From: Neoechinorhynchus agilis
Taxonomy: Eukaryota > Animalia > Acanthocephala
Reading direction: 5' to 3'
NCBI GenBank assembly: GCA_051530055.1
Contig: CM121342.1
Span: forward strand, 3,347,489 to 3,411,488
Length of the DNA: 64,000 bases
Below the pieces are notes generated by a model. The model was not told the DNA's origin. It saw only the letters and a program-made list of their open reading frames with translations, and did no database searches. The position numbers were made by a program, and so were the translations under genes. Below, piece by piece: positions 2,417 to 40,436 of the stretch; the first letter of the stretch is position 1; each line of letters opens with the position of its first letter.

Positions 2417-2426
2417 CAGCCAATCA
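2417..2426 (+). promoter_or_regulatory. possible CCAAT box upstream of the small secreted peptide gene
   Basis: CAGCCAATCA about 320 nt upstream of ATG 2748; motif match only. Confidence 0.25.
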
Positions 2427-2710: not shown

Positions 2711-2717
2711 TATATAA
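2711..2717 (+). promoter_or_regulatory. TATA box
   Basis: TATATAA about 30 nt upstream of ATG 2748. Confidence 0.45.
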
Positions 2718-2747
2718 GATCCGTATACGCTTACGTTCGATAACGAA

Positions 2748-9017: not shown

Positions 9018-10095
9018 GAGTTAAATTCGACATTCAATCTCACTCATTCTGCCTCGATCAACTTTCAACGAGACTTAGGTATAAACACTTCCTTGTCGAA
9101 TACTTTTTCAGTATCCCTGTCAACTCTGACAAGTTCAAAATAACGCATAGCAATTTCCTTGTTCTTAACAAATCCATCCGTATTTTCAACTGCATTGACG
9201 ATACGCGTCCTTTTTTATAGTAAAAAGGTCACATATTGACATAGAAAAATTTCTTTCTATGAAGTCTATAGGCTTCAAGAAAATCTCTCCAGCGAATAGA
9301 ACCACGCGCAATTTCCTCGGCCACTTCCGATGCATCCGTGATAACACAAAACCGCATAAACAACATAATGTTGTTTTGCTCTGGTTTACAAATACGACAG
9401 CGTATAAAATATTTTCCTGGCATTAAATAACCTGAAAGCGGATTATATCCTTTTAAATGTACGAACGGCAGGTTATTTCAAGAATTATTGACATGATCAC
9501 TCGTTCTAGAAATTTCTTCTCGAACATCCGACTGAATCCGCAATCAACATCGACGAACAAGCCTAACAGACTTAGCATTTTAACAATTTCGTAAATTTTT
9601 GCGCCATATACTTATCGAAAACAGACATTGCACACGACTTTACTAACATCATCACAAGCGACATCCTTATAGCTTCTCTGCTGGCTCAGAGAGCATTCCA
9701 TGACGTCATCAACATTCACTTCGTTCCATAGCTCTGTACTATGCCGTGCCCTTCAAGGAGGATCAGCGAATTCGATCCCATCCTACATGTCAGGGTTTTT
9801 ACCCCGTCTAAAACATAAACTTTGCATACGTCATAAGACTCAGAATTTTCACAATTTCGGATATTTTTCGCCGTTCACTTGTAGAATACCGATATTTTCC
9901 CGCAACACTGCAAGCATTCAGGAGACAATTGAGGACGAGGACGGCGAATAATTATGTTTATATCTTCAAACAATAAATTGATGAAACTTTCAAAAAAAAT
10001 CGCAATTCAGATTCAATTGAAACGCCAAGGATATGCCAATCATCTACTACAAACTTTATAGATCAAGATGAATTCCTTTCAGTTTCCAAAGATGA
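9018..10095 (-). repeat. modules M+N copy 1 (unknown gene fragments)
   Basis: Matches 21150-21650, 27490-28790 and 57031-57286. ORF 9229-9423 MPGKYFIRCRICKPEQ is a frameshifted version of 21202-21561. Confidence 0.8.
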
Positions 10096-10259: not shown

Positions 10260-11204
10260 CTAATCGTAATCGTACAAAAAAGATGGACCCTCTCGGATAT
10301 TTTCATTTACAACGTATGTACTGTCCTCGGTCTCGTGAGGGACATCCATTTCATTGATCGATGTTACATGTTTAAATAGTTCACTAAGTTCGTATTCTTT
10401 TGTGAGATCCGAATCCTTTTCATCTTTTAATATCTCCTTACAAATGTGTGAGCAATAATTGAGGCAATTCGTTCTTCTTTTTGATCCATTTTCGAAGCAC
10501 GAAACTAGTTCATCATTTGCCGACAGCAAGATGTGATCGTCAGAACTAATTTTTCCACGATTATTCGTATTTTCAACTTTACAATTTACTATTTTTACGT
10601 TATCAATATTAATGGGTGTTTCTTTGGTATTTACCATTTTGCTGAAAAGTAAAGTTGTCTTCTTTTTTAGCCGTTTAAAGCATTCAGATACGCAGGAAGC
10701 CATACACTTTTCAATGCTAAAAGCTATTTTTCCATATCTTGACAGTCCTGAATAATCACCGAAACACGTTCGTTTACATCTTTGAATACAAAGCTCGTTT
10801 CTCAAGGCTCGGAACTTTGTCGTTGATTTTATGTTAGAACTCGTTTTCTTGCATTCGTCTTTTCGGGTATCAAATCGATTTGACTTTGTATTTTCTCTTA
10901 AAGTTAAGCTCGGTTCTCCTTCAGTCTCGAAATTATGTTTACCTGAAACATCACTCATTTTCTTCATATTCTGTTTATTATTTATTGCATCGCCCTCTGC
11001 AAAATTGTTATCCTTAACCCCTTGCTCGCCGGATAACCTTTTGTTATTCAATATTTGTAAATAACTTTCCAATTTCTTTTCTTCATACTGAAAGTGTTCA
11101 ATTTTCGGCACCTTTTCATTAACTTTACCATTTGTATGCTGAAAGTTTACGACGATTGCAGTTCCCAGCAACAAAACTGAGAAATAAAACTTTGAAGCGT
11201 TCAT
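10260..11204 (-). CDS. secreted CX3CX3C-motif protein (family S), short 314-aa form
   Basis: ATG..TAG. Signal-like MNASKFYFSVLLLGTAIVVNF. Motifs CIQRCKRTC-x19-CMASCVSEC and CLNYCSHIC. Paralogous to 36050-38890. Confidence 0.65.
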   Translation of the reverse strand: MNASKFYFSVLLLGTAIVVNFQHTNGKVNEKVPKIEHFQYEEKKLESYLQILNNKRLSGEQGVKDNNFAEGDAINNKQNMKKMSDVSGKHNFETEGEPSLTLRENTKSNRFDTRKDECKKTSSNIKSTTKFRALRNELCIQRCKRTCFGDYSGLSRYGKIAFSIEKCMASCVSECFKRLKKKTTLLFSKMVNTKETPINIDNVKIVNCKVENTNNRGKISSDDHILLSANDELVSCFENGSKRRTNCLNYCSHICKEILKDEKDSDLTKEYELSELFKHVTSINEMDVPHETEDSTYVVNENIREGPSFLYDYD

Positions 11205-11754: not shown

Positions 11755-14700
11755 TTAATTGGCGATCGCTGTCCATTTATCCACTTTGGCGGTCCAGTCG
11801 ACGGTGTTGGCCCATGCGAAAGGAAGAGTGGAGCTGAGTCTCAGGAAGGTGCAGCGAAAGCTCTGGCGTTGTTCGGGCGGTCGTCCTCTAGAATAGAAGA
11901 CTAGACCAGATATGGCCCATGAGTTCCAAATAGATCTGCAAATCTTTGGATTGAGGCCTAGTCGGGCAGCACGCTTTGCTTTAGCATTGGCACATTTGAA
12001 GAGGCGTTTCATCTTATGTCAGCCGAGACTGAAAGATTACTGGTAAGGGTATAACCTAGAATGTTGAGTCTTTGCTATACCGGGAAAAAATCAAGGGCGA
12101 AAAACTTCTTGGCAAAGTCTCTAATGCGTCGCTTACCAACGACGGATTTTGATTTTATTAAAAACTTGGTCTTTTTATTATTTAAGGCAAGACCCATGTG
12201 AGGGAGTTTTTCTTTTAAGAAATTCTGAACTGCAGCAAGCTTCGCTCGAGCTCGCGTTCTTTTATTACCACGGTGAGATCATCCGCGTACATGGTGATAG
12301 AATGACAGACTTTGCAGTTTTGAACAATATATTGGGAGGCCAAACAGAAAAGAATCGGTGATAGAGGGGAGCCTTGGGGAACTCCTTTAACCTGAAAGTA
12401 AACTGAGCGAGCGGGGTCGTCCGAGAAAAAGAACCGTTTGGACTTCAAGGTATTGTGAACCCTAGCTATGAAATTGAAAGGAAAATTAAAAAACCGCAAA
12501 ATACTCAGGATAAAATCAATATCGATATTGCCGAATGCCTTGCTGATATCAAAAGAAATCAAGATATTCATAACACGACGGTTCTGGCCAAAATTGAGTA
12601 TAATTTCGTTCATAGCAGAGTGGACTGATTTGCCGGGAACGAAGCCATGGCATCGCTTATCGATGATATTATGCTCACAGGAGAACGCGACGATCCGCTT
12701 TGCCAATATTCTCTCATAGATGGAGACCAACGAGTTTTGAATGGAAATTGGTCTCACATCTCCCGGAGAAGATATTGATCGAACCTTACCTTTGCGTAGG
12801 AAAATCCTTTTCGCAATATTAATTTCGGACCATTCTTCAGGTGAGGCTAATAGCATGACACTGGCCAATAATGAAATGTTATCCCTACTCAAGACGTTGG
12901 TTGCTTTGAAACAAGCTGAAGAGCCGTTGCATGAGGTAAGATTCTTAGACGTCCACCATTGTAAAAAATCTTTTTTGGTGAGATCAAGTCTCCGTGGTTT
13001 AGGAAGTATGAAGCTAGTGGCGATGGGAATCGGACTGGCACCGTTGGAGTGTTCGGAGCAAAGTGCGCTGATGACTGTGTCAAAGCCTAAAGCTCTGATC
13101 CAGGCGGCAGCTGCCCTTTTCCATGGGAAGGAGCGCTTCCGGTTTACTACTCTCCACCATTCCGATGAGTGGGGTAGGTAAGAGCTGATCATTTTGCGAT
13201 CTTGGGCGATCTGGAATCTGGCTTTGCACGGCCAGTAGAGAGATGACCAAAACTTAGAGGAACTGGTGTCGCCCGCTGCCTTAGCTTTAAAGAGCTCCTT
13301 ACCGTAAAGGGATAATAGATTGGGTTTCCGAGGTATTCCTACGGATCTCCTGACGGTAGTAAGGAAATTGTCACTAGTGTCAGCCAGAAAATTGTTGATA
13401 TCGTTTAGCTCGGTGGATTTTGAACCAGACAAAAAAAGCGGGTAACAGCATTGAAGAGACTGACATTCAACCATCTCAATTTGAACTTTCGCGATAAACG
13501 AACGTTCTTGTCGAGCTCCCAAACTAACAAGTCGTGCCCAGCGACCCGAAAGGGAGAAGATAGAAGTTAAAATAGGTTTGTAAAAACCAGTTTTGCGGTA
13601 TAGATGAAGATCCGTCAGTAAAAGTAGGATAATCGGGCATAATAATGTTGTGGGACTCTCCAGAACGAATAATAGAATTGATCCATTTATGCGAAGGATC
13701 ATTGAAATCGCCAAAACAATAGTCAATACCGGTCCCTAAGATGTTCTTCAGTATGGACTTATTACAAGGGAGATGTATCTTATGAGGCCGGACATAGATA
13801 TTTGCTAATAAAAGTTCAGAGCCATTAAAACAAACTAAAAAAATTGAATAAGACAGATCATCGGAGGAATACGATGTAATCTGTGTAGGACCGAGAGAAG
13901 GCCGGAAAAAAGACAGTTGACCCTGGGAATTCGGCGAATGAGGAGGGGTACAAAATATGACAAATTGTTCCGTCAGTGAGCTGAGACATTGAGGTAGGTC
14001 ATGAACATTATAGACAGACTTGGACTCCTGAATAAAGATGGTGCTGCACCTCAAGGCCTCTGAGAGCTGTCCATGGATACTTAGCCGTCCACCAGAATTC
14101 CACTGCACGATCCTTAACTCCGTGCTGCGCACTCTTGAATAAGTTTGTGACCTCCCGCGGCACAAACCTGAGATTGTTCTTGGATAATATCCCGAACGAA
14201 GAGTTCGTTCTCGGACATCTCAACGTCTGAGTTGGGCAAGTTCGGATTGACGGGAGACGCTTTACGGATACGTTTGCAGGAAATCGGGCTGTCGATAGAT
14301 CCATGAGGAAACATGTTGTCCAGTCGTGAGGATATAGTCGCCATTAGTGCGTCCAGATGAGAGGCCAATCTTTTCTCGAGTCCTTGTATAGCCATATTTA
14401 TCCGGAGATCTACCATCTGCATGATCTTATCCGAAAATTGGCGAAGTTTTCCATCGATAGAATCTTGGTTGGGTGACATTCGCTCAGAGCGCCATTCGTT
14501 CGATGGCGGAGGGGCAGATTCATGGACTACTTGCTTGTTTGGTGCCTGACATACGATGCTAGCATTGTTGTTTGCGGACGGTTTCGTTTGAGCCCAATGG
14601 AGATATTGCTTGAAAACCGGACAGGATTTCGAAAAGGCGCAATGTCCTGTCTTCTTACAGTTGGCGCAACATTTTGTATCCTTCGGACAAGCTGATGAAT

Positions 14701-15559
14701 GGTGGTTGCACGCGCAAAATGCGCAAACGGACTTTTTTGTAGGGCATCTTTGTGACCAATGTCCCCAGGATTGGCAGATGCTGCAGCGTGGGAACGTGAA
14801 GTCGTCCAGTCTCGATATCTCGTTCATGGAAAAATTGACTTCCATTCCCTGAAAGCAACATCTCTCACTTATTAGCGCATCTCTCCGATCAACCGGAGCT
14901 TTTACTACCGCCCTATGAATAAGCTTGGCTGTACGGGCCGATTTGAGGAAGAATAGAATCTCACAAGCAAACTTGTTCTCGAACGATTTTTTCTGCAGCA
15001 TCGATGTCGCGAGAAAATCCATTCACTAGGAAGGTTGATTAGTAGCTTGCGTTTGTAATTTGAACGTTAGACGTGTCGCAATTCATTTCGAGCCATTAAA
15101 GTATATTTTTAATTGGCCGGCGAAATATGTAGTAGAGGTGATTCTTATGATGTCATCATTGAGCGTTTTGAGCCACGGGGACAGTAATCGTTTAAATAGT
15201 TCTTCTCGTGATAGAACGGGATTAGCTTTTAAAGATATAACGTTGGATTTTTTCTTCGAAGGTGCCTCCAAGAAGACGAGTTCCTCGGGCGAGCTGGTTG
15301 GATTGTTTAGTTCAGAGAGCAACAACTCTCTTGTTGCAGAAGATACGGTTATCTTCAGTGTATTTGGTGGCCGAATGCCACCCTCCGCTAACGCCTGAAC
15401 GTTAATTGACATGGACGACTCAAGGTGATCGAGGATAAGTTTTGTCGTGAGATTGATGAGGCGAGGTTTACTCCTTTGAAGTAATGTTTTATCCCGGGGG
15501 TTTGCGATACCAACTAAAATCCGTGACCTGATTAAATTTGAAGGCATCTCTTCCCACAC
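11755..15559 (-). mobile_element. near-complete APE-RT LINE (Jockey/I-like group), frameshifted
   Basis: ORF1 with three CCHC knuckles RCSICQSWGHWSQRC..CAFCACNHHSSAC..CANCKKTGHCAFSKSCP (14114-15022; N-terminus 15083-15559). APE VQWNSGG..FIQES..NIYVRP..GDFN (13524-14165). RT RPISI..HGFVPGKS..DISKAF..GVPQGSPLSPILF..YADD (12215-13726). Confidence 0.9.
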
Positions 15560-19526: not shown

Positions 19527-21048
19527 ATGAGTATTGGCGAAAAGTCAAACCCAATGATGAGCAATGGTGCGATTGCATCTCAGACGGCACATAAAAAATG
19601 AAGATAATCAACGGAGGGGTTTTAGCGAGGGTGAAGATTATTCAATATCCGTCGAATTGCATTCAATGATAATTTTCTAAAAAGCGTTCACGTTCATTTT
19701 AAAAAGATTTGCCTTAAAAATAAACCGTTGATGTGCAATCAGTTAATTTTTAAATAAGGAAAAGAATTTGTTATCAATTTCGGTCGGTCCTGAAACCGAG
19801 ATCGTCAGAGTCGAATATTCCGACAGATTCAATCGATGATTTTATCAATTCAAGTGTAAAAAACCTCAAAAACGACCGACGGAATTGAGATAATCGGAGG
19901 TGAACATTGTCTCTATCGACTGAGAAAAAGATTAATAATCTAACCGATGGATACGACTAAAGAATTTAGGCGAACAAAAAGTTTTTAAAAACTTTCACAT
20001 CTCCGCTTCGGTCTTTTTTTGTAGTGGTCGAAAGGACGAATTCAGCGTTTCTCTGAGATCAGTTTTTTGCGTAAAACATTAGTCCGCAATCGTGGAATAC
20101 GCAACGCAAACAATTACGTCACTTCGAAAGCATCCAAAGGCGAGGGAGGGCCGATAATCTCGTTTTTGTGTTCGAGATTTCATCTGCGACCTAGAAATTT
20201 GCTTTTGTTTTTGCTTAATAGCCCACAAATTTGATGCCAAGAAAAGTTTACGCTTAAAATCAGCATTTATCGTTTCCTTTTGATGATATTCGATAATCGT
20301 TGATATAGAAGACGATGTTCAATTGACTCATTTAGTCATAGATGAGCTTATTAATGGATTTACGGGAAAAACGATATTTACAAACATTCATCGAAAGGTA
20401 GGCAATTTTTGTTTAACCACAAATTAATTCGCCTTCGTTTTAAGGAAAGGTCTTAAATTTTCGGCTGAATCAATGAGATGCAGATTTCTTAAGATGATTT
20501 TCCATCGCCTTCACAGATACCAAATATTCGTCAAAGGTTTTCTCTTCCTTTTGAAAAAAAACGTTGACTAACAAATCAATCGATATTGTCGGTTATTGTA
20601 AATCACGCAGCTTTCAAGATGTCAATTCTGAAAGGATTTCATGTTTGCGAATCCGATGTAAACGACGAAGTGAAAATCGAAGAGTTTATGGATCTTCCTG
20701 GTAAGGAGAATCAGGGCGATTCAATTTCTGAGGTCCTCAAGACCAATAAACATGACGCAGCGACTCAGACGTTGGGACAAGAACCATTTAGATTTAAATC
20801 TCCTTTGGAGTTAATCAAAAACATTGATGTGAATTATAGAGATTTGAGAAAATTGGGTGAGAATGTTTTAGATGCAGCGGACAGGCGACTGTACGCCATG
20901 GTAATGGCGCAGCAAACAAACCAACATGGAATCGATTTTTCTCAAGAATAAATTATGTAAACGCTTTCTTTAGCTTAAGATAGCCGTTAAATTTTATCGA
21001 AGGTTGCTTTCGGGCGGTTTTCAATTTTTATTAATGGCGAATTTTTAC
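19527..21048 (+). repeat. module U copy 2, including a 121-codon open frame (20586-20951)
   Basis: Matches copies 1, 3 and 4. Frame ...SILKGFHVCESDV...AQQTNQHGIDFSQE* is also open at 48793-49158. Confidence 0.8.
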
Positions 21049-21201
21049 CGCCAGAATTTAAAAGGATATCTCATGGAAAAATTCCCGCACTGGAAGCCAA
21101 CGAATTCAGGGGGATTAATATACTTATTAGTCGAAGTAAAAGACTGAAATATTCGAGTTAAATTCGACATTCAATCTCACTCATTCTGCCTCGATCAACT
21201 T

Positions 21202-21561
21202 TCAACGAGACTTAGGTATAAACACATCTTTGTCAAATACTTTTTCAGTATACCTGTCAACTCTGACAAGTTCAAAATAATGCATACCAATTTCCTTGTT
21301 CTTAACAAATCCATCCGTATTTTCAACCGCATTAACGATACGCGTCCTTTTTTTGTAGTAAAAAGGTCCAATATTGACATAGAAAACTTTCTTTCCATGA
21401 AATCTATAGGCTTCAAGAAAATCTCTCCAGCGAATAGAAGCACGCGCAATTTCCTCGGCCACTTCCGGTGCATCCGTGATTACACAAAACCGCATAAACA
21501 ACATAATGTTGTTTTGCTCTGGTTTACAAATACGACAGCGTATAAAATATTTTCCTGGCAT
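21202..21561 (-). CDS. module M ORF, unknown 119-aa protein (CRIC motif); best-preserved copy
   Basis: ATG..TGA. Other copies are frameshifted or fused. No recognisable domain. Confidence 0.4.
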   Translation of the reverse strand: MPGKYFIRCRICKPEQNNIMLFMRFCVITDAPEVAEEIARASIRWRDFLEAYRFHGKKVFYVNIGPFYYKKRTRIVNAVENTDGFVKNKEIGMHYFELVRVDRYTEKVFDKDVFIPKSR

Positions 21562-21934
21562 TAAATAACCTGAAAGCGGATTATATCCTTTTAAATGTAC
21601 GAACGGCAGGTTATTTCAAGAATTATTGACATGATCACTCGTTCTAGAAATCCTGCTACTAATCAAAGTACAACCATCGAAGACAATGAATTGTATTAAT
21701 AAAAAATGTGACGATATTCTCTTTTATCTAAGATGCGTGCACTTACAATTTGTTTTTTTAGTGCGTTTATAAACATTCGGCCTTTTTTTACAAAAATAAA
21801 AATCGCATTAATGTTTCGAATTAAAAGGTGACACATTTGTGCCATTATTTATTATATAACTTTGTTATTAAATTCTATGGAGGGAACGTGACACATTCAT
21901 CGTTCATATTTATTTAAACCGAACGTAAGTTTGT

Positions 21935-23950
21935 TTAAAGCTCAACGCTTTTAAATATTGGATATAATATATCACACGCCTTCGACAGTTCATCGTAATT
22001 TCTGCCATTCATTACTATCTTTCCTGTTGTATAAGCCTCAATCTTAACATCGATTTCTTCTATGGCTACATTTGCCCCATGGGAAATTTCCGGCTCGTAA
22101 AAGAATTTGCTTAGCTTTCTCGTTATCGGATCTTTCTTCGCCCATAAATTGAGCAAACGATACATATCGATTTTAAACCGAAAATCGGTTTTAGCTTGAA
22201 TCTTTTTCAAACTATATTCTCGAATTTGAGTCTCCTTCACTCCCGCTTCTGCAAGGCGACGAACTGCATCTTCTGCCAATTCACGGGTCTGATCGATGGT
22301 TCCTGAACAATAGACGACAGCTCGACCAAATCGGTAAAATGTGACTTTACCCGGGGGAGCGTAATGCATTAATATTAAAATCTTTCCATGTTCGTCTGTT
22401 TTGGCATAACTAATTTTTTTGACAAGTTCACGAACGTTGAGCTCACCGACGATATGGAAAGTGGCGACGATGTTATAGACAACTATTTGAAATTTTGAAG
22501 ATTCTTGATTAACTGCCTGTGATTTGTTATCGAGTTGACCTTCTGATTCAGTTCCGGGCTTTTGAAGTGAACATCGTCTTTTTCTCTCTTTGTTAATCAA
22601 ATGAATATTTCGTTGTTTCACTCTTGTATCTGAAAAATCTTGATTTTTCGTCGGGTCCGCATGAACTTCATATTTACGTTCAAGATTGGGCATTGATTGA
22701 ACCGAATGTCTTCTCGGAATTTCGGGAACCATATCGCGATATTCGTGTAATATAAATTCGCCACTTGAAATCAACTTGCTGGGGTCAAAGATTCTACTTG
22801 TTATTAATTGCGGATCAGTGTAAGTATTTGGTACTGAATCGATTTGTGTTGACTTTACTTTATGACTTAAACAAGTTATTGAAGGTGTGCTTTGTCGTGA
22901 TAAAGAGCTGAGCTGGCGAATTCGACTAGAATAATTCGTAGTGGATTCATGTACTTGCTCTTGATTTAAATCGGATAAATGTCTATTTGGCGCACTAAGA
23001 AATTGAGATGGCAATTGTTGCCGACTGAAATGTCGAGCTAGTCCAGGATATTGATTGACGGATAGTCTGGTAGGTGGATGAACTATTTGTTGAGATCGTT
23101 GTTGGGAGGGATGAATTTGGTGTTGATCGACCGCATGTGGATTTCTGTACGAATCAACTAATGAATTAGTTCTTTTATGTAAATGTTGTTGTGGCTGTGT
23201 TGGTCGAGAATGAATCCTGTTTGAAATATTTGAACATCTACTAGCCATGAACTGATTATACAAATCAGGTTCTGAAATCGGACAATTCGGCTGCTGTGAA
23301 TGTCGTGACTGGATTGGGCGTTCTATCGATTGGCTTTCCAGTTCTTGGCGCGGATCTGATCCACTTGGATTGGGCGAATTTGATAAAACCGTAAAATCAT
23401 TTGGATGAAGTCGCTGATTTGGATACAATGGCTGTACATAAACGAACTGTGATGGCAATTGTTGCCGACTGAAATGTCGAGCTAGTCCACGATATTGATT
23501 GACGGATAGTCTAGTAGGTGGATGAACTAATTGTTGAGATCGTTGTTGGGAGGGATGAATTTGGTGTAGATCGACCGCATGTGGATTTCTATACGAATCA
23601 ACTAATGAATTAGTTCTTTTATGTAAATGTTGTTGTGGCTGTGTTGGTCGAGAATGAATCCTGTTTGAAATATTTGAGCATCTACTAGCCATGTACTGAT
23701 TATACAAATCAGGTTCTGAAATCGGACAATTCGGCTGTTGTGAATGTCGTGACTGGATTGGGCGTTCTATCGATTGGCTTAACCCTTCTTGATGTTGTAA
23801 CGATCCACGTGCATTGGGCCAATTAGATAAACCCGTAAAGTCATTTAGATGAAGTCGCTGATTTGGATTTGTTGATGTCATTCGAATTGTTCGTGGTCTG
23901 TTGTCCCATGAACGTACTTTAAGTTTTGGTCGTTTGTTTCCGTCATTCAT
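21935..23950 (-). CDS. highly divergent TBP-like (TRF/TLF-type) factor with long Q/S/H/P-rich N-terminal extension
   Basis: First ATG at 23950 (ORF track starts at GTG 24037); TAA at 21935. The C-terminal ~185 aa align by eye to the TBP saddle: YNIVATFH..ELNV..L; P.GKVTFYRFGRAVV; KIQAKTDFRFKIDM; FYEPEISHG; KIEAYTTGKIVMNG; AC..LYPIF. Confidence 0.85.
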   Translation of the reverse strand: MNDGNKRPKLKVRSWDNRPRTIRMTSTNPNQRLHLNDFTGLSNWPNARGSLQHQEGLSQSIERPIQSRHSQQPNCPISEPDLYNQYMASRCSNISNRIHSRPTQPQQHLHKRTNSLVDSYRNPHAVDLHQIHPSQQRSQQLVHPPTRLSVNQYRGLARHFSRQQLPSQFVYVQPLYPNQRLHPNDFTVLSNSPNPSGSDPRQELESQSIERPIQSRHSQQPNCPISEPDLYNQFMASRCSNISNRIHSRPTQPQQHLHKRTNSLVDSYRNPHAVDQHQIHPSQQRSQQIVHPPTRLSVNQYPGLARHFSRQQLPSQFLSAPNRHLSDLNQEQVHESTTNYSSRIRQLSSLSRQSTPSITCLSHKVKSTQIDSVPNTYTDPQLITSRIFDPSKLISSGEFILHEYRDMVPEIPRRHSVQSMPNLERKYEVHADPTKNQDFSDTRVKQRNIHLINKERKRRCSLQKPGTESEGQLDNKSQAVNQESSKFQIVVYNIVATFHIVGELNVRELVKKISYAKTDEHGKILILMHYAPPGKVTFYRFGRAVVYCSGTIDQTRELAEDAVRRLAEAGVKETQIREYSLKKIQAKTDFRFKIDMYRLLNLWAKKDPITRKLSKFFYEPEISHGANVAIEEIDVKIEAYTTGKIVMNGRNYDELSKACDILYPIFKSVEL
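23001..23872. repeat. 444-bp (148-codon) in-frame tandem duplication within the TBP-like gene
   Basis: GATGGCAATTG at 23007 and 23451; GAAGTCGCTGATTTGGA at 23407 and 23851. Confidence 0.95.
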
Positions 23951-26900
23951 TTCGAATGCAATAGTGTAATAACCTTCTATAGAAAGTGAGAACAAAAGGC
24001 GATGAAATATTGAAAGTGTAAGCGTTTTGGTAGACACGATAAACAGTATAAAGTTATTTGCCAGTCACTCATTGGCTCTTTTTCTTAATTAATTTAGCCC
24101 TAATGAAACACGTGATCTAAATTGACAAATAAAATAGTTAAGGCATTTTTAACTGATTTTGATTAGATCAGATCCTTTCAATGCCGTGCACAGGTATTTT
24201 AAAGTGTAACTTTGAATGACGCTAATTTCTCAGCAAATCTACCGTTGCGCAATGAAAATAAACGACTTTTGTTTTGGTGCAAATGAATTTGATGGTATTT
24301 TTACTACCATAATTAAAGCAATGGGGAAAAAAGTCAATGAAAGCACTTGAAGGTTTTGATCAATTCTTTGAAAATTAAGATAAATTTATTTTTCTAATTA
24401 GAAAAAATCAAGAATTTTTACTTCGTAAAAATGTTTTGATGTCTATTTTTCGCAAATTCAGTCATTTTAGATTTTGTGCCGATGGTTAGGATTTAAGAGA
24501 TTTCAAAAACATTTGCATAAAACGTGGAATAAAGTTTAATCGAAATTGATTTTCAAACGAAAATATTCTCTTGGAGCAAGATAGCTCCATAAACTTAAAT
24601 ACATGTTATTTGAAGTGTGCTACAAGCCATATTAAGTGTGATTTAATTGTCAAAAAACTATAACGACCCGTGGAGTAACTTTTAAACCAGTTATTTTTAA
24701 CAAAAATCTTTTTCGTATTCGTAGAATAAGGAACGTTTTCAACCCTTTGTGCGAAATTCTTTGTTCACAACAACATCTCCAAATATTTACCGTTCTCACT
24801 CACCTCTATTTAGTAATACCGATTCCTTTTTATCTCGGAAACCGCGAAAATGTTAACCCCTCGTTATTCCGAATTCGTTCGCCATGAAAGGTTTCTCTAT
24901 GATTTAGATAAGCACAATTTTTACCTCAATTTTTCATCAACCTCCGGGTTTTACCATCTTACGCTTTTTTGTAAAATTGCATTTCTGTAGCGTTCCACGA
25001 TGATGCCCTTAATAGGACGAATCTGTATCTAATTTATTGATTGTTCCCGGAGAAACATTTCCAATCGCTAATCGCCATGCCTTGATGATCCCTTTTTTGT
25101 AAAATAAGACTGGCTAAATAATTTTAAGTGTTGTTATTTTGTTCGTAAACACAACCCTTTAATGTATTCGATTGGACAATCTAAATTTTGAATCTCGTTC
25201 AACTCCCAAATGTGGAACTTATTCGAATAAAAATCGGAAATAATCGCTATCTAATTGTCTGAGGCAAGTCGCTCTTTATAAAGATGATAAATACGAGCGA
25301 CGGTCGCAGAGACCTAAAATGCAAGGCAGGCGAAATTTCTGAAGATATTTTCCAAAATATTCAATGAGAGAAATCTTTATAAAAAATGTTGACGAAATCA
25401 TTTTGTCTAAATAGAAGGCAAAATTATCTTTGCCTTTATTTTATTCGGCTAATTTTTATCTTCGGTGGAATCTTCACCTTTTTCGCCGGTTCTACCGTTT
25501 TATTATTTCTTTCTATATTGTGTTGCTCTCAGATGGTTTTATCGTCGCTAACGCATATTTGTTTAGGTAGTCGAACAAATACTCAATTCGAACATTCAAA
25601 AAAATAATTCTATTTGAGTAATGCGGGATCGATTGAACAGAAAAGTATTGTTAGAAGTTCACCGAAGCCTTATCTTCGGGTGCAAGGAAAAATTCTAAAG
25701 GACTCATTGAACCGATTAATTGTTGATAAAATCGATGTTCGATCGTTCGATGAAATGTTCGGCTTTGAGGTTTCTTAACGACTGTTATAAGAATAAAGTT
25801 CCCTCTCGCCTCTGCTTTTGTAGGAAACTCGCAATCGAGGACAAAGTGTTTCATTGATTGGATTTTCAATGTCGATTTTGATCTTTAACCCATCAATGAT
25901 ATTTTCTCCGTTCTAAAAGTCAACTACAATTATGCTCGTTAAAAGAAGCCTCAATCACTCATTAAACTTATTGAACGAGTTGAAAGGACGAGGATAAATG
26001 AAAAGTTGGCTACCGGTATCACCAAGACTTTAGCAGTTATGATGTCCTAAATAAATCATTGATATTTTCTCTAAAATAAAATGTAGATCCTAGAACGCGT
26101 TCGGGTCCAAAAATCATGAGAAACGTTAATGTCTAAAGGTTAAATAAAATGATTTCTTTAGTTTAAATATTTCTTCATAATAAAATTTATTGGTAGTTTT
26201 CAGCTTCCCAGATTTTTATATTTTTCTTAAAAAATTTATTTCTTTATTTTTATTTGTATCATATTTTTAAACGGAATTATTTTACAGAATAAATTGGTGG
26301 TATTTAGGGTTAAAAAGAAGGTCAATTTAAAATACATTACTCGAGTTTTGTTGATAATATTAGGAAAGCGAAAGGTTGAGACAATATGAAATTTGGTCGC
26401 TATAATATAATTGAAATTTCTGGGAATGCATTTCATCTGATTTTATAAAATACGCATAAAAGTTTCGCTCTTCCATGAATTCCAAACTTCATTCTATGAA
26501 TGAGATCATGAATTTAAATAAATCATTCCTTCAATTGGATTTGAACAAAGGTTTCTACGCTTTAGACGTAGTAATTTCATATAGATTTCAGTTCATTTTA
26601 AATTTCATCTTAATATGATTTATAAGATATCGAAAATTTGATTGAATTCCAATCTGTTTATTACGAAGTTAACGCCTCGTGAACAACTTTTTATTCTAAA
26701 TATGGAGTTCCACAGTAAAACAATCCTTTTACCTTCGCAGATGATATTTTTTTGATTTTGTGCGGTAAGATCTAGAGGAAGCAAAATGGACAACATTTTA
26801 GGATATTTCAATGGTTTGCTCCATGCTTTTAGGGAGGCGAATTTAATCATTAATCTTGATATAACTTTTATCATCCTCTAAACTAAATAATTCGCTCCAG

Positions 26901-27392
26901 GATCCTTCTAAATAAATGCAATTATTTCTATTAGAATTTTAAAATATTTTAACGTCAAAAGGCATTCAATAATTTTGGGCGTCGATTTCCCTTGAAGAAA
27001 ACAGGGATTCGGAACAACTTTTCTTTTAAGTGCACCTTTAGGAAAATCGAAAGTTTTATTAAACGCTCAAGACACTTGACGGAACCAAATGCGAATAATT
27101 GTGTCTCTTCGTACGCCCCCTTTCTACAAGCATTGCTAAAAAGCCAGGAAAGTTATTCCATAGCCTAAATATTGATTATAGCATTTGAAGCAACATTTAA
27201 ATTAGTTATTTTATAACAAAATTCTTGCCTATAACGTTTTTAGAATACTATAAGCAAACGATTCCAGTAATACGAAATGCAGATCGGTTAAAATGTGAAC
27301 CGATAGACTCCCTTGGTTCCGAATGTGATTTATTGAATATATTTATGAACTTATCAGAATTGAGCGAGATACGAATATAATGAATGCATCCA

Positions 27393-28790
27393 TTTTTACG
27401 CCGGAATTTAAAAGGATATCTCATGGAAAAATTCCCGCGCTGGAACCCTGCAAATTCAGGGAGGGTTAATATACTTATTAGTCGAAGTAAAAGACTGAAG
27501 TATTCGAGTTAAATTCGACACTCAATCTCACTCATTCTGCCTCGATCAACTTTCAACGAGACTTAGGTATAAACACATCTTTGTCAAATACTTTTTCAGT
27601 ATACCTGTCAACTCTGACAAGTTCAAAATAACGCATAGCAATTTCCTTGTTCTTAACAAATCCATCCGTATTTTCAACTGCATTGACGATACGCGTCCTT
27701 TTTTATAGTAAAAAGGTCACATATTGACATAGAAAAATTTCTTTCCATTAAGTCTATTGGCTTCAAGAAAATCTCTCCAGCGAATAGAAGTACGCGCAAT
27801 TTCCTCGGCCACTTCCGATGCATCCGTGATAACACAAAACCGCATAAACAACATAATGTTGTTTTGCTCTGGTTTACAAATACGACAGCGTATAAAATAT
27901 TTTCCTGGCATTAAAAAACCAGAAAGCGGATTATATCCTTCTAAATGTACGAACGGCAGGTTATTTCAAGAATTATTGACATGATCACTCGTTCTAAAAA
28001 TTTCTTCTCGAACATCCGACTGAATCCGCAATCAACATCGACGAACAAGCCTAACAGACTTAGCATTTTAACAATTTCGTAAATTTTTGCGCCATATACT
28101 TATCAAAAACAGACATTGCACACGACTTTACTAACATCATCACAACCGACATCCTTATAGCTTCTCTGCTGGCTCAGAGAGCATTCCATGACGTCATCAA
28201 CATTCACTTCGTTCCATAGCTCTGTACTATGCCGTGCCCTTCAAGGAGGATCAGCGAATTCGATCCCATCCTACATGTCAGGGTTTTTACCCCGTCTAAA
28301 ACATAGACTTTGCATACGTCATAAGACTAAGAATTTTCACAATTTCGGATATTTTTCGCCGTTCACTTGTAGAAACCCGACATTTTCCCGACTTTCTTAA
28401 CATCATCACAACCAACATCCTTATAGCTTTTCTGCTTGCTCAGAGAGCATTCCATGACGTCATCGACATTCACTTCGTTCCATAGCTCTGTACTATGCCT
28501 TGCCCTTCTTGGAGGCTCTGCCATTTCGGGCCCCTCATGTAAAACAGGGTTTTTTACCCTGTCCAACACTTAACTTTGCTTACGTCATAAGAGTAAGAAT
28601 TTTCACAATTTCGGATATTTTTCGCCGTTCACTTGTAGAATGTCGATATTTTCCCGCAACACTGCAAGCATTCAGGCGACAATTGAGGACGAGGACGGCG
28701 AATAATTATGTTTATATCTTCCAAACAATAAATTGATGAAACTCAAAAAAAATCGCAATTTAGATTCAATTGAAACGCCAAGGATTGAAG
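27393..28790 (-). repeat. modules M+N copy 3, with an internal ~266-bp tandem duplication (28133-28665)
   Basis: AACATCATCACAACC at 28133 and 28399. Matches 9018-10030 and 21042-21650. Confidence 0.85.
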
Positions 28791-28829: not shown

Positions 28830-29331
28830 CTAGAAATTTGCTAGTTTTCGCTTAATAGTCCACAAATTATATGCCGAGAAAAGTTTACGCTTTAAATCAG
28901 TGTTTATCGTTTTCTTTTGATGATATTCGATAATCGTTGATATAGAAGACGGTGTTCAATTGATTCATTTAGTCAAAGATGAGCTTATTAATGGATTTAC
29001 GGGAAAATCGATATTTACAAACTTTCATCGAAAAGTAGGCAATTTTTGTTTAACCGCAAATTAATTCGCCTTCGTTTTAAGGAAAGGTCTTAAATTGTCG
29101 GCTGAATCAATGAGATGCAGATTTCTGAAGGTGATTCTCCATCGCATTCACAGATACCAAATATTCGTCAAAGGTTTTCTCTTCCTTTTGAAAAAACGTT
29201 GACTAGCAAATCAATCGATATTGTCGATTATTGTAAATCACGCAGCTTTCAAGATGTCAATTCTGAAAGGATTTCATGTTTGCGAATCCGATGTAAAAGA
29301 CCAAGTGGAAATCGAAGAGTTTATGGATTTT
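28830..29331 (+). repeat. module U copy 3 (3' part), same U|CRE-B junction as copy 1
   Basis: TTTATGGATTTTACTAAAAATC junction identical to 4825-4845. Confidence 0.85.
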
Positions 29332-31831
29332 ACTAAAAATCGATCAGTTTCTTCCACCGCCGTCCCCACCATCTCTGCAAATCACGACTCGCCGCATGTC
29401 GCACCGCCCACGCCCGACGCTGCTGACGCACGCGGATCACAGGAGGATCGACGCTGCAAATTCACAAAATCAACTTTGGTCCGAATAACCTGTAGAGAAC
29501 AAGCGGCAGTCGGAAATTTCACTTGCTCTGGGCGCTGAGGCCAATGCTGCCCGAGATCCGAAGGTCTCGGCATATAATTGCCCGATCTGTGACAAGCAGA
29601 TCAAAATTACCAAATTGGGAGAATTTTGGACTCACGGCCCAAGGGATTCCCGACGTGTTAGTTCCGGCCTTCTGCTAGCAAACTCTGTTCCTCAGCTCAC
29701 TGAACCTCGTCAGAACATCAACCCTTCGTTGCTGGAGATCGTGCGCTGCCCAGAAACATCCTGAAAGGGATCCCGAAGGGCGCTCGATTTCAGGTAGCGA
29801 AGAGGTATTCAGCTGAGCGAATGTCTCGAGACAAATATCGAAATATCTTGGACAAGCCTTTTCGCGTTCCCGAGACTGGTGCTCTGGAGTACCACCTGAC
29901 GTGTCCCTTGTTACCCTCATCCAAAACCGGGTGTCCTCCTTCGATAATTCGTTTGTAGAGGTCCTACGCAAAGCTCAGGTTTTTAGGGGAGATTTTTCAA
30001 AGCCACCGAATCCGAGCCGAGTTTCAACCCGTTCAATGACCCAGAGACTGTCTTCTAAACTCGCCGATGGTGAAGTTCGATTCGTATTCTATCATCCACC
30101 AACGAATTCGCAAGAGATGATACGAAAACTCACGAACTTCTCAGAGATAAACATCCTCGGTCCGCTGGTCATCTGGGATATTCGGAGATGATCCCCTCGT
30201 GCACCCCGTTAGAATTTTCGGTTGATGTTGTTAAGAAAGCCGTTCCTTCGTTCTCAAATGAGTCAACCGATGGGCTCGACCGGCTTCGGCTCAGCACCTA
30301 AAGGACATGATGTCCTTCTCCGTAGATGATCCATCCCATGTTCTCCTGAACGCCTTAACTCGGTTAGTCGGCGTATTCTCTGGAGACAACCTGTCCCCCA
30401 AAGTGATCGAATTGTTTTCATGTGCTTCCTTCCGCGCTTTAGAAAAGAAGGACGGTGGGATTCGCCCAATCGCGATTGGCTCTACATTGAGACAACTAGC
30501 AGGGAAAGTTATTTCTGGGCGAGTATCAGAAGGTCTTGCTGAAATTCTTTGTCCAGTTCAACTAGGCTGCATCACACCTTGTGGGCGCGGAAGCCATAGT
30601 CCACGCAACTCCGTACATTTGTTATTGGGAACGTCAAACCGTGTTTGATCCACGCCTTCAATTCCGTTAATCGCAACTCGCTCTTAAAAGCTGTCAGAGA
30701 TCACGCACCGAAGGCTTACGGGTATTTTAAAAATTCGTACTGAGCTGCGACCCCTCTTGTATTCAACGATCACATTATTCCTTCCGAAAGAGGCGTTCAA
30801 CCAGGAGACCCATTGGTTGCGCGCTCACAGCGAACGAATTAGCGCATTCTCTTGATGCCGAATTCAATGCCACCTGGACGATGCTACGCTGGGAGGCGAT
30901 CCCCAGGTAGTTGTCCGTGACCTGGAGAAAATCAAGATGGGGGCTAGCAAACTGGGCATTGAATTGAACACAGAAAAGTTCGAAATTCTATTCCGTAATA
31001 TAGAGAGCGGCCCTGCAAAAGACGTAATAAAGTGTGACATTGAAAATGTTGCACCCGGGATAGAAATAATCGACCTTGACCGGCTTAAGCTTTAGGGCAG
31101 TTGCGTCTTTGATAGGAATGCAGAAAACTAAATTAACAACCTTCTAAAGAAGTTATCGGTGCCTTGCGATAGGGTCTGTGAGCTTGGATCACACGAGGCT
31201 CTGTTCTTGATAAAGTACACCCTCTTCATCCCCAAGTTCCTTTATGTTCTACGCACTGCCCCGTTTTTCAAGCACGAGGTTCAGCGTGGCAAGCTAGATG
31301 ACAGATTGAAGGACTGTCTCGAGCAAGTTTTAAATGTCCAGCTGTCAGAAGAGGCATGGCGACAAACATCCTTGCCTGTATCTTCTGGCGGGTTGGGTAT
31401 CCGGAAAACAGCAGACATATTTCTGCCCGCATTTTCAGGCTCCTATGAGGGAAGCGCAGTTCAGCGCATTTTGAAATTTACTTATCATTTTGATAGGCAT
31501 TTTGAAGAGGGAATCAGTGAGCGGTGTAAACTGACCAACTCCGGTCAAGTAGCTGTGAATGGCCAAAAACAATCTGTGAGGGTTCGACCTCTCGACGCAA
31601 GTGTTCAAGGCTCTCTCTCTTATCAGACTCAAGCGACGACGTTGCCCGTGCCAGGTTGTCACCAGTCTCCAGTAGAGAATCAGGTGCTTGGTTGAACGCG
31701 GTCCCGTTGCCATTTGTGGGTATTCTCCTCTTCGACCAGGCAGTACGGGTCGGAGTTTCAATGAGACTGGGACTACCGATGTGTCATCCCCACCGATGCC
31801 GCTGCGGTACAAATGTGGATTCGTCGAGGAC
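29332..31831 (+). mobile_element. CRE-B copy 2 (uninterrupted, decayed, truncated at the Zn finger)
   Basis: FRALEKKDGGIRPIAIGSTLRQLAGK; PVQLG; GV.QGDP; WRQTSLPVSSGGLG; CHPHRCRCG. Confidence 0.88.
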
Positions 31832-36049: not shown

Positions 36050-38890
36050 CTAATCGTAATCGTACAAAAAAGATGGACTCTCTCTGATATTTTCATTTAC
36101 AACGCATGTACTGTCCTCGGTCTCGTGAGGGACATCCATTTCATTGATCGATGTTACATGTTTAAATAGTTCACTAAGTTCGTATTCTTTTGTAAGATCC
36201 GAATCCTTTTCATCTTTTAATATCTCCTTACAAATGTGTGAGCAATAATTGAGGCATTCACTGAATTTTGCATTGTCGGTCACAGAATCGGTTAATCAGC
36301 TTCAAATGCAATCGCGTTTGGCCAGCACTATCTCTTTTCGAAAGCTTCAAAATCGATTGGATTTTAGTGGTAATCAGGTCGCTAATTCTTGGTAAACTGT
36401 TAAAATTTACTGATTCGGAATTCGCGTTTGGCATTTCAGATGTATTACTCACCGTCGGTTTCGCATCCTTCGATTTAGCAACGACCTTATCGCTGGGCAG
36501 CAAGCTGAGTTCTTTTTCAAATATATTCACGTTTTGATCATCGGATAATTCATTGACGTCAGAATGAACTTCCTCAGATTCCAGGCTTTCCTTGAACTTG
36601 TTAACAATAGATTCATACTTAACCGTCTTTGTAGAATTTGCTTCAGCTTGATTTAATTTACTACCGATTTGCTCATGAAAATCAAATTTTTCAGATCGGT
36701 CACTTAATTTTTCGTCCAATGAATTTTTGAGTTCAATTGTGCTTTTTTGATTTGTTACTTTATCCGAAAAAAATGATCCGATGAATTTCTTTATCGTCCT
36801 GGTCCAACTTTTTGAGGAAGATGCTGCTTTTTCTACTTTAATTATCATTTGCTCTCCTTCTCCATTTATTGACGTCTGAATTTCAGGAAATGGCAATTCG
36901 TTCATTATCGAAGGTTCAGATTCGATCTTTGATGTGGTACTGTCCGGCGATTTTGCCGTTTGTTCAAATTCTACATCTCCGGCTCTGTCGTGTTTCGCAT
37001 CGATATTGTTGGAGATTTCAGTATCTTCATTATTTCCTAGTACAGTCAAATTCGGTTCATACTTTTTTGCTTCTTTAATTGTAATCATTTCCGTTCTCAA
37101 CCGTTCATCTCGAGCTTTAACCTGTAGACAAATTTCGTTGGCTATTTCAGGATTAAGATTCTCGTTTAGGTCGAAGAGATTTGCTGATGGCAAAGTATAG
37201 ATTTCGGCCAGCACCCCGAGAACGAGAGAACCATCTCTGCTTTCGATTGCACCCGTTTTGCGAGCTTTCAGTTTGAAAACCTTAGAAATGTAAGTTTCCC
37301 CAGTTTTGAAAGAAGATGATTTATCGGCCTTTAAGGTAACTGCTTTGTCATTTATTTGCTGTGTTTCTATTATCAAAGATTGTGTCATTAAACTTTTACT
37401 GTCCATGATGGAGGCAGATCCCTTCTCAATTTGTAGATTCGATTCGGTCAATATATAGTTTCTGTGCTGTCGTTCGTAACTTCCAAATTGAACGCATTTT
37501 ATCGAACAAAGTTTGAGGCATCGCTGTCGGCATTCATTTAAGCGTTCTAAACCGTTCGATTTCTCAATCATTCGGATTCCCCACATTTTCTTGTAGGTTT
37601 TTAGACGAACAAGACGTTTATGAAAATCTGCGCTAATTAGGTTGTATTCGCCATTGTCGTTTGTACCTTTCTTTTCTTTGTTATATCCAGAATTTTCGAA
37701 CCTGTAACTTAGTTCAAACCGAGTTCGTTGTGGGAGTTCAATGCATTCGTTTTTACAGGACGATAAACACTTTCCTCTGCTAAAAGCAACCTTTCCGTGT
37801 TTCGATAGCCGAGAATAGTCGCCAAGGCACTTTTGCCGGCATTTATCAGTGCAAAGCTCAGTTCTCAAAGTCCTTGACTTTTCGATCGAATTTATCTTAT
37901 TACCACTGGTTCGCTTGCAGTTTACTTTTCGCGAATGTAATCGATTTGAAGCTGAATTTTCTCTTGAAAGGACGTTGACGTGCTTTTCATTCAGTGGTAT
38001 TTGAAGCGTCGGTAGCTTTCTTGCATTGCAGATAAAATTCAACTCTCTGAGCTTCGTCCATTTACTTTGTAACTCTTCGACTTCGTTGATTTGAACACGG
38101 CACATTCCGTAACATTTGTCATCGAATGAATAACTCAACTCGTTTGTAATATAGAAATTATAGCCTTTTGAAACCTCCGTAAATCCCTTGGTCATGGCCG
38201 TGTTATTCTGTGAAGTGTCTACTGCTACATTTTCGCTAATAATGCTGCTTTCTATAAATACATTTTGGTAAGGGAGAGTTTCATTTCCCAGTTTCCGTAT
38301 AATATCCAGAAAATCTTCGATATCAACTTTTCCACCATTTTGTTGTTCATTCATTAATCGAATATCAGCGATAATTGTTTTCGGCCGTAGCAAAAACGAA
38401 ATGTAGAACTCCTGAAAGTTGACTTGCAAATAGATCGCTACTTCTGTATTCAATCTGCTTAAACTTCTATTCTTAGTCGTTTTCGTTACAAAGTCAAAAA
38501 TTAGCTTCGGTCTCCGAAAGAGTGTTAGCGCATTTTGATTGGATCGTCGAGATACCCCTTCAAATTTGATTCCGTTAGCGAAATTTAATAAATAAAATAC
38601 AAGACATCGCTTTCGATATTCGTTCAGACATGCGAGAATATAAGATTTACCTTTAGCTTTTAAAACTCTTCTTTTTTGTCCATTTTCGAAGCACGAAACT
38701 ATTTCATCATTTGCCGACAGCAAGATGTGGTCGTTAGAACTAATTTTTCCACGATTATTCGTATTTTCAACTTTACAATTTACTATTTTTACGTTATCAA
38801 TGTTAATGGGTGTTTCTTTGGTATTGACCATTTTGCTGAAAAGTAAAGTTCTCTTCTTTTTTAGCCGTTTAAAGCATTCAGATACGCAGG
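36050..38890 (-). pseudogene. family S long form (857-codon open frame), 5' truncated, frame break at 36258
   Basis: Shares MVNTKETP..KRR and the CLNYCSHIC..YDYD C-terminus with 10260-11204 but carries about 2.4 kb extra, including a second 6-Cys domain CTDKCRQKC-x19-CLSSCKNEC and CRQRCLKLCSIKC. Confidence 0.75.
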
Positions 38891-38962: not shown

Positions 38963-39150
38963 TCGTCTTTGCTCTTCTCCTTTCCCAGCGTCTTGAAATC
39001 TCCGCTCGGGCCTCCCTCTTCTCGTTTTCCCCTCGAGTTCGATTCTCCATGCGCTCTTCATCCAGGCGTCTTCATCTGCTTGTTTCACCTGCGGGTACCA
39101 CCGCATCCGCCTCTTAGCGATTGCCTCCTCGATCGGCTCGGCAGCCTCGT
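38960..39150 (-). mobile_element. RTE family 1 scrap
   Basis: AEPIEEAIAKRRMRWYPQV..WRIELEGKTRRGRP. Confidence 0.85.
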
Positions 39151-39740
39151 CGGGCGCTGGGTTCCATATCGAACATGTTTCGGTTGATACTCCGGAATCC
39201 GACCTCGCAAAACAAGACCAAGTAGAGCAACAAATTGTTCTGTGCCGGGTACAGTTTCCCCTGTATCCTGAAATCGAACATTCTGACCTGTCCCCTATAA
39301 CTGATATCCCCATGTTCTGCACATTCAATTCTATGAGCCAAATGTACACTCTGACCACTAAAGCTAAACACCGAATTCTCCCAATGTTTTCGGGCGATCA
39401 TCTTGACCATTTTTGACATTGAAAACATTGATTTGCATGGCGGATCAAAGAAAACGGCATAATTGAAGATTTTATACGAAGGAAGCTTTTCCACGGTGAA
39501 AAAGTTTGACAGGACGTTAACGCGCACTCCACTTTTACCGACATCAACTAAACGATCCATATCCTCAACATGAAACGCTTCAGAGAGTTCAGTACCAAAT
39601 CGAGGTCGGCGACGTCCTCCATGCTCACCACCCGTCGTTCCACCACCAACAACATTGCTTGGGTCACCGGGATGATTTCGAGCAACACTCATTTCCTCGA
39701 GACGACGTTGAATGCTACGCTCACCACGATCAGGATCCAT
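39150..39740 (-). pseudogene. Piwi/Argonaute-family N-terminal fragment (N domain and linker), truncated before PAZ
   Basis: GKSGVRVNVLSNFF..LPSYKIFNYAVFFDP..FSFSGQSVHL..KLYP..LLYLVLF..SINRNMFD resembles Piwi GxxGxxVxLxxNxF..YxYxVxFxP..FDG..LF..IGRNYY. ATG at 39740 and a Gly/Arg-rich leader. Confidence 0.7.
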
Positions 39741-40159
39741 TTTTTGAAGCTGTCTCTGAAATTGAAGATTCGAAGCACGATTAAAACTTATGTCACGTCC
39801 GCGGAAATATCGTCTCGCAGTAGCGAAAAAACGTGATTTAAGATTCCAAAATAGGCGAAAACATCTCCATCGATGTCAGTCCTTATGACCATTACCAAAA
39901 AACTGTACAAAGAGAAAAGTTGCATGAACGCTATTCGAACTCTGCAGAAAAAATAAACAATTTCACTCTTGAGCGCTGGTTATGATTATCATCAATTGAA
40001 ATATTTCGAAAGAGCAATTGCTCCGTTTTCTAGAAGCGCCAAGATCGTCTCGCAGTAGCGAAAAAAATGTTATTTTAAGAATCTTGTTCTAGCGGCAAAA
40101 ATTAATGGAATTTATAAAATCCGATATTTCGAGGGCTACAAGATTATCTATCGTAAAAA

Positions 40160-40436
40160 GATTTAAAAACAACCTCGATAAAGACGTACTCCAGATTATG
40201 CACCTCGGAAATATCGAATTTAATAAATTCCTTTAAACTTTCCGTCTCAATAATGAACAATTCAATTTTCTAATATAAATTTGTCGAACAAGTGTTTTTG
40301 AGAATAAAAAGCATCGATAAAGATGTAGTAAAGATTATGCACCACGGAAATATCGAATTTTATAAATTCCTTTAAACTTTCCGCCTCAATCATGAACAAT
40401 TCAATGTTCAAATATAAATTCGTCGAACAAGTGTTT
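40160..40436 (-). repeat. 139-bp LRR-like tandem repeat, about 2 units
   Basis: (T/A)CGGAAATATCG at 40205 and 40344. Same unit as 56313-57036. Confidence 0.85.

Follow-up and report, generated by a model that had tools for sequence, protein, structure and literature searches.

Among the duplicated and decayed sequences of a small parasite genome lies an intact reading frame for a protein resembling the TATA-binding protein (TBP) that has none of the four phenylalanines of canonical TBP, and this raises the question of which branch of the TBP family it came from and what such a protein could still do at a promoter. The gene occupies positions 21935-23950 on the reverse strand of a 64,000-nucleotide stretch of DNA (hereafter the window, in which all coordinates without a contig or locus name are counted) from Neoechinorhynchus agilis, an acanthocephalan parasite of mullets, and an exact look-up of the encoded protein placed it at ~3.36 Mb on the 16.4-Mb chromosome CM121342.1 of assembly GCA_051530055.1. 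Taken together, the evidence makes it probable that the gene is an N. agilis-specific, rapidly diverged duplicate of TRF2/TBPL1/TLF that is recruited by partner proteins and that came under constraint after its DNA-facing surface had been remodelled.

The original prediction, made from the letters of the sequence, concerned 21935-22497(-), which corresponds to the last 187 codons of a mechanically called open reading frame (ORF) of 700 codons starting with GTG (21935..24037, reverse strand). Public annotation instead starts the coding sequence (CDS) at an ATG at 23950, giving a single-exon "hypothetical protein" of N. agilis with 671 amino acids (21935-23950, reverse strand). The assembly is a 46-Mb draft whose gene models were built by BRAKER with mRNA-Seq evidence (PMC12690905). 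A candidate polyadenylation signal, AATAAA, lies 21 nt 3' of the TAA stop codon (21909..21914, reverse strand).

The carboxy-terminal part of the protein clearly belongs to the TBP family. TBP (PF00352) was the sole Pfam family found, matching two stretches within the last 200 residues at 41.9 bits against a cut-off of 22.9. An AlphaFold2 (AF2) model of the 201-residue C-terminal piece, whose numbering is used below next to yeast TBP numbering for reference columns, reached a predicted local distance difference test (pLDDT) score of 93.4 and a predicted template modelling (pTM) score of 0.83, with the strands and helices of the TBP repeat in their proper order, twice; this model drew on an alignment of 56 family members (A1) and is hence not fully independent of family membership. 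In a Foldseek comparison of the piece with the PDB, the top matches were all TBP cores (1qna, 7egb, 1cdw, 1ytb) with template modelling (TM) scores of 0.82/0.91 and root-mean-square deviations of 1.6-2.0 Å, and the next fold class dropped to TM ~0.3-0.4. The profile search and the structure prediction that the original prediction had called for thus both came out in its favour, and show, as far as a confident model can, a complete two-repeat TBP saddle. Pfam, the model and the alignment agree on repeat 1 with strands S1-S4 and helices at piece residues 19-98 (22247..22486, reverse strand) and repeat 2 at residues 107-197 (21950..22222, reverse strand). The TBP core is ~80% conserved from yeast to human (PMC3142196), a level that the N. 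agilis protein, with 17-20% identity to the solved TBP cores, does not reach.

The residues facing the DNA were read in a MAFFT alignment of 41 extracted family domains, in which the named TBPL1 references had been obtained by a further search seeded with a TRF2-like match. At the column of yeast F99, the protein has the same one-residue deletion as the named TBPL1s and reads G52 (22385-22387) when anchored on Pro62. The columns of F116, F190 and F207 hold Y69 (22334-22336), S153 (22082-22084) and Y170 (22031-22033), against W, H and F in named TBPL1 and Phe throughout in TBP. The minor-groove quartet of Asn69, Thr124, Asn159 and Thr215, which reads N/T/N/T in both TBP and named TBPL1, has become N/Y/K/N: N23 (22472-22474) keeps the first Asn, K113 (22202-22204) replaces the second, and Y77 and N178 stand in place of the two threonines, so that three of four contacts are changed. 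From this alignment the residues that recognise and kink TATA are shown to be gone, with the Phe pairs reading G/Y and S/Y, and the protein carries neither the canonical Phe set nor the TBPL1 signature of W/H/F and N/T/N/T, although two of the four Phe positions are still aromatic through Tyr. The stirrup is retained as Y148-E-P-E151-I152 (Y-E-P-E at 22088-22099). These assignments agree with the earlier calls of four missing phenylalanines, one kept and one replaced Asn and an intact acidic TFIIB stirrup, the last being a matter of motif. All of these codons lie on the reverse strand, those of N23, G52 and Y69 in repeat 1 and the others with coordinates in repeat 2. The net charge of the core is +5 (pI 9.1), compared with +11 to +20 in named TBPL1s, and is the lowest of the metazoan TBPL1-type sequences compared.

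One of these columns can be read in another way. When HMMER aligns the protein pairwise with Arabidopsis TBP, the S3-S4 hairpin moves by two residues and F71 comes to stand opposite F116. Y69 is favoured here because no gap interrupts its alignment between the conserved Pro62 and the last residues of helix 2, because the nearest relatives read 'IYRTGR' where this protein has 'FYRFGR', and because repeat 2 of the model mirrors the pattern of an aromatic residue, two variable residues, a Gly and a basic residue starting the next strand. Under either alignment the F116 kink position is aromatic.

Relatives of the protein are few. Whether queried with the full protein (domain region) or with the 201-residue domain alone, word-index protein searches returned only the gene itself. 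As the claim of lineage specificity rests on an absence of relatives, HMMER was then run exhaustively against 1.84 billion representative proteins (E <= 1e-3); it gave only 32 matches, found no orthologue, and placed all relatives above 30% identity within the N. agilis genome. The best matches were the N. agilis proteins KAL7672296.1 (P0003; 59% identity, first repeat only) and KAL7667466.1/KAL7671379.1 (P0004; 86 bits, range 86-88, 28% identity), followed by sequences from the bdelloid rotifer Adineta steineri (P0005; 66 bits), a Logan contig (P0006; 53 bits), MetaClust (P0007; 51 bits) and the acanthocephalan Pomphorhynchus laevis (P0008; 47 bits), those of Adineta and Pomphorhynchus being of TRF2 type. 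A mixture of TBPL1, eukaryotic TBP and archaeal TBP from various sources lay at ~35-44 bits, with canonical TBPs at 40 bits or less. When compared with the TBPL1-type members of alignment A1, the protein was 14-26% identical.

A maximum-likelihood tree (IQ-TREE, LG+C20 with posterior mean site frequencies (PMSF), 191 columns; supports given as bootstrap/Shimodaira-Hasegawa-like approximate likelihood ratio test, SH-aLRT) grouped the protein with P0003 and with P0002, a paralogue of 96% identity described below (100/100). This trio was sister to P0004 (95/84), and both fell within an acanthocephalan group including P. laevis (99/97), with Adineta one level further out (83/92); the whole assemblage was nested in the clade holding every named TBPL1 (100/98). 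Two indels, rare changes that do not depend on the substitution model, tell the same story. From the Asn column to Pro62 there are 18 residues in this protein and TBPL1 versus 19 in TBP and archaeal TBP, and from Gly173 to the Y-P motif 22 versus 23, the deletions lying before S2 at the F99 site and after S4'. A Trp-containing loop insertion before the stirrup is further common to the protein and P0004. The stem branch leading to the trio measures 3.64 changes per site compared to 0.24 for P0004, which scores 188 bits on a TBPL1 profile and 131 on a TBP profile. The gene is therefore not a one-to-one TBPL1 orthologue: P0004, with its shorter branch, is the likelier conventional TRF2 orthologue of N. 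agilis and the gene its fast-evolving sister. With moderate confidence, these sequence comparisons identify the protein as a TRF2/TBPL1-derived paralogue alongside that orthologue.

This ancestry changes how the missing phenylalanines are to be understood. The original prediction had proposed a lineage-specific TBP paralogue; the specificity to the lineage stands, while the origin would lie in TRF2/TBPL1 and not directly in TBP. Nor do the phenylalanines appear to be a fresh loss from TBP. Because the protein would descend from TRF2/TBPL1, the lack of Phe at the first and third positions would be ancestral, and positions 2 and 4 would have changed conservatively, from W to Y and from F to Y. 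What would be new in this lineage are the Lys at the second Asn (N159K), T124Y and T215N, the Ser in place of the TRF2 His, the very long stem branch, the drop in core charge to +5 and the long N-terminal region.

Some other family members deserve mention. P0004 is encoded identically at two places, on CM121342.1 and on contig JBMGUZ010000054.1 (L004 6001-7035), the gene being a single exon, and the copy on this 19-kb contig may be an uncollapsed haplotig. KAL7677337.1 (P0009), from a 19.4-Mb contig of N. agilis, is another extremely divergent TBP-fold protein, with an end branch of 4.0; it has Phe at the first kink position, and its indel states are partly those of TBP and partly those of TBPL1. 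A TBP-family protein in Logan SRR2835692 (P0010; L005 3635-4447) has Y/Q/T/Y at the four Phe columns and was considered as a possible orthologue, prompted by a common 'AKTD.RFKID' motif. It was rejected as such on its TBP-type indel states and its unplaced position in the tree; it probably represents a protist TBP relative that came to lack the Phe set independently, and the likeness of motif is taken as convergence or chance.

Whether the gene is maintained can be judged from its copies. A second intact copy (P0002, KAL7671661.1) lies 4.9 Mb away on CM121342.1, at 8.24 Mb, with 96% protein identity and no difference in length. Comparison of these two young copies gave a ratio of non-synonymous to synonymous substitution rates (dN/dS) of 0.36 for the whole CDS (19 synonymous and 25 non-synonymous changes, p 0.001), 0.45 for the N-terminal region (p 0.02) and 0.11 for the TBP domain (5 synonymous, 2 non-synonymous, binomial p 0.007). 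Mismatches amount to 2.18% in the CDS versus 4.6-6.4% in the aligned flanks (Fisher p 9e-9), and no indel event is found in the 2016-bp CDS where 6.8 would be expected from 14 in 4151 bp of flank (p 0.001). A third copy, P0003, has decayed: in L003 (7708-8892, 9120-9578 and 13718-14545) it carries an in-frame stop (7972-7974) and another directly after TBP repeat 1, and a second TBP repeat was not found in this L003 copy. The two intact copies have thus been under purifying selection since their duplication while another decayed, and the TBP-like family of N. agilis follows a birth-and-death pattern in which two copies have stayed intact. It had been suggested beforehand that the intact ORF reflects selection and that a processed pseudogene would speak against it. 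The deficits of non-synonymous changes, indels and substitutions uphold the former and answer the latter as far as sequence alone can. Around the decayed copy, a GIY-YIG (Penelope-like) ORF lies directly downstream, and a further fragment 6 kb away holds the N-terminal region only.

The N-terminal region itself (~485 amino acids, 22498..23950, reverse strand) has no Pfam domain and no similarity to the N-terminal region of P0004. Its composition is dominated by S (13%), Q (11%), R (9.5%) and P (9%), with only 24% hydrophobic residues versus 41% in the TBP domain, and it is presumed to be disordered and regulatory. Within it, a 444-bp (148-amino-acid) unit is repeated in tandem and in frame at 23001..23868 (reverse strand), the units being 93% identical; the unit is doubled in both intact gene copies and single in the decayed L003 copy.

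TLF/TRF2 does not bind TATA, binds both TFIIA and TFIIB, is poorly conserved between species and has roles in the germline and embryo (PMC3142196). By analogy, the N. agilis protein would likewise not bind TATA. It could be brought to TATA-less promoters by partners, for which the long N-terminal region rich in S, Q, R and P is the probable point of contact, and once there might nucleate a pre-initiation complex through TFIIB, for which the stirrup motif is present, and possibly through TFIIA. After the duplication, the DNA-facing surface would have been remodelled, as the very long stem indicates, and then constrained, a sequence of events that suggests a new and specialised set of targets rather than decay.

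Several observations weigh against this interpretation, and those concerning ancestry would fit a divergent duplicate of canonical TBP in which all four phenylalanines were lost independently in this lineage, as originally framed. An approximately unbiased (AU) test does not reject a position outside the TBPL1 clade (difference in log-likelihood 12.2, p 0.22), so that the phylogeny that had been called for no more than leans to TBPL1. The protein scores as high or higher on TBP than on TBPL1 profiles (85.5 bits versus 49 on a narrow TBPL1 profile; 89.9 versus 85.0 on a broad one), it carries the TBP-like motifs 'K-I-Q' in S1' and 'G-K-I-V' in S4', and its long branch makes any placement less secure. 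Nevertheless, a direct origin from TBP is unlikely. The best pairwise matches are all TRF2-type, headed by N. agilis P0004 and with canonical TBPs at 40 bits or less, the supported tree nests the protein in TBPL1, and both diagnostic indels are held in common with TBPL1 and P0004, the loop insertion with P0004 as well. The TBP profile, moreover, behaves as a generic one, since the sequences behind it come from diverse protists and archaeal TBPs score highly on it too. Profile scoring was consequently judged uninformative as a test of ancestry, being contradictory with the narrow TBPL1 profile and tied with the broad one.

Other difficulties concern function in a TRF2-derived factor. With its reduced positive charge and a Lys at the Asn159 column, the protein could bind DNA weakly or no longer at all. 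The main functional rival is accordingly a decoy or modulator without useful DNA engagement, which would sequester TFIIA and/or TFIIB or other partners of TBP and TRF2 and thereby tune the transcription that depends on them. Such a role is a minority possibility. In its favour, the E-P-E-I stirrup is kept while three of four central groove contacts and all four Phe are changed, the core charge is the lowest in the comparison, and a negative effect of TLF on transcription, through sequestration of TFIIA, has been reported (PMC3142196). The core is nonetheless still basic, aromatics remain at two kink positions, and some constraint also seen on the 485-residue N-terminal region suggests functions in recruitment or activation. 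Few substitutions, 7 of them in the domain, stand behind the selection estimate, and gene conversion may have taken place between the copies. Alternatively, then, the two genes could be a young pair drifting into pseudogenes whose ORFs are intact only as a matter of time, in a region rich in transposable elements (TEs) where other family copies have decayed; the intact copies differ by only ~2%, that is by few events, and the text and one supplement of the N. agilis transcriptome paper make no mention of TBP, TATA, Piwi or the locus tags. This is very unlikely given the significant deficits of non-synonymous changes, indels and total substitutions relative to the flanks, two intact 2-kb ORFs and a very long stem followed by constraint focused on the domain; the mRNA-Seq evidence behind the BRAKER gene models (PMC12690905) points weakly in the same direction. 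The preferred reading thus remains that of a retained, TRF2-derived factor recruited by partners.

The surroundings of the gene indicate how it was copied. A block at 21667..28640 (reverse strand) matches the locus of the second copy at 8.24 Mb (L001 5102-12283) colinearly at 91-96% identity, and this ~7-kb block is a segmental duplication that took in the gene, ~4.6 kb of sequence before it and 0.27 kb after it. At 39146..40327 (reverse strand) the 5' part of a Piwi-family gene survives in truncated form, 94-95% identical to L001 3-1438, and in L001 a PAZ/Piwi gene (440-3482) lies 6.5 kb upstream of the paralogue in the same orientation. The relic in the window and the gene in L001 therefore indicate that the duplicated block originally held both Piwi and the TBP-like gene; in the window, ~10 kb of inserted sequence now separates the Piwi fragment from the gene. 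Their co-duplication is a matter of adjacency and no evidence of function. The Piwi gene of L001 is annotated as two models (368 and 536 amino acids, 54 bp apart), as would happen if the annotation had split it or the gene were disrupted.

Two dispersed repeat families, each with at least four copies in the window at 93-97% identity, bracket the gene in an order that is swapped between the two sides: one at 20207-20699, 28844-29334, 48416-48906 and 4348-4832, the other at 21043-21648, 27393-27998, 9018-9510 and 57028-57285. The flanking direct repeats (21043-21648/27393-27998 and 20207-20699/28844-29334) could be taken for TE capture or a structure resembling long terminal repeats. This was rejected in favour of segmental duplication because the repeats are dispersed and swapped and the shared block reaches the Piwi fragment, and nothing was found that would mark the gene as part of a mobile element. 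The window otherwise abounds in fragments of non-LTR reverse transcriptases and in multi-copy ORFs that carry no known domain. Pfam identified retroelement remains at 12215-13726 (-), 41411-42658 (+) and 53125-54198 (-), two of these ORFs with RVT_1 (E 1e-26 and 4e-18) and one with a weak, sub-threshold GIY-YIG match (17.6 bits) as in Penelope-like elements. Long ORFs (up to 857 amino acids) of a multi-copy family, without Pfam match and with near-identical blocks in common, lie at 36258-38831, 10260-11204, 40435-41535, 44088-44999 and 15083-15559, all on the reverse strand; some members have Cys-rich stretches and one a signal-peptide-like start. With these retroelement fragments and dispersed repeats around it, the gene does sit in a field of dead fragments, as had been remarked at first sight.

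Duplicates in the TBP family are a textbook case of the core transcription machinery diversifying in animals, and the known cases are few, namely TRF1, TRF2 and TBP2/TRF3. The N. agilis protein is an undescribed, species-restricted member of the TBP-related factors that probably derives from TRF2. With TRF2/TBPL1/TLF it has in common the two-repeat saddle, both of the one-residue deletions that set them off from TBP, the E-P-E-(L/I) stirrup and the lack of Phe at kink positions 1 and 3 with aromatics at 2 and 4, and the maximum-likelihood tree places it within the TBPL1 clade beside the species' own TRF2-like P0004. It differs in reading Y/S/Y instead of W/H/F and N/Y/K/N instead of N/T/N/T, in its 14-26% identity, its charge of +5 and its 485-residue N-terminal region with the 148-residue duplication, and in being a paralogue found, in the data searched, in one species only. 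With canonical TBP it shares the fold, the first Asn, the stirrup motif and the 'K-I-Q' and 'G-K-I-V' motifs, but it is without the four Phe, has three of four Asn/Thr contacts changed, 17-20% identity and TRF2-type indel states. In kinetoplastid TRF4 and dinoflagellate TLF, intercalating Phe are also replaced and the proteins act at non-TATA promoters, although their origins are independent of that of the N. agilis gene.

Insect TRF1 and vertebrate TBP2/TRF3 are likewise lineage-specific TBP-family duplicates, often with divergent N-terminal regions and with tissue- or germline-specific use (PMC3142196). These derive from TBP and bind TATA, whereas the N. agilis gene would derive from TRF2, TLF being the sole TBP-family member unable to bind TATA (PMC3142196), and lacks the TATA-reading residues. 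In Drosophila, the Moonshiner/Deadlock-TRF2 system recruits a TRF2-type factor through chromatin readers and not through DNA sequence (bioRxiv 10.1101/678227). The co-duplicated Piwi gene offers a likeness to it by analogy only, no functional link, Moonshiner/TFIIA-L paralogue or Rhino having been found here. It is highly improbable, if conceivable, that the gene is a TRF2-derived germline factor, born in acanthocephalans with Piwi co-duplicated, that would initiate transcription at repeat-rich or piRNA-source loci through chromatin or partners and so represent an independent invention of the Moonshiner-TRF2 logic. The missing Phe, as mostly an inherited TRF2 trait, are not surprising in themselves. 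What sets this case apart from the known ones is that TRF2 itself would here have been duplicated, in a parasite whose heavily reduced genome measures 46 Mb; if expressed, the gene offers a natural experiment both on a TBP saddle with every TATA-reading residue replaced and on how a TRF2-type factor finds its promoters.

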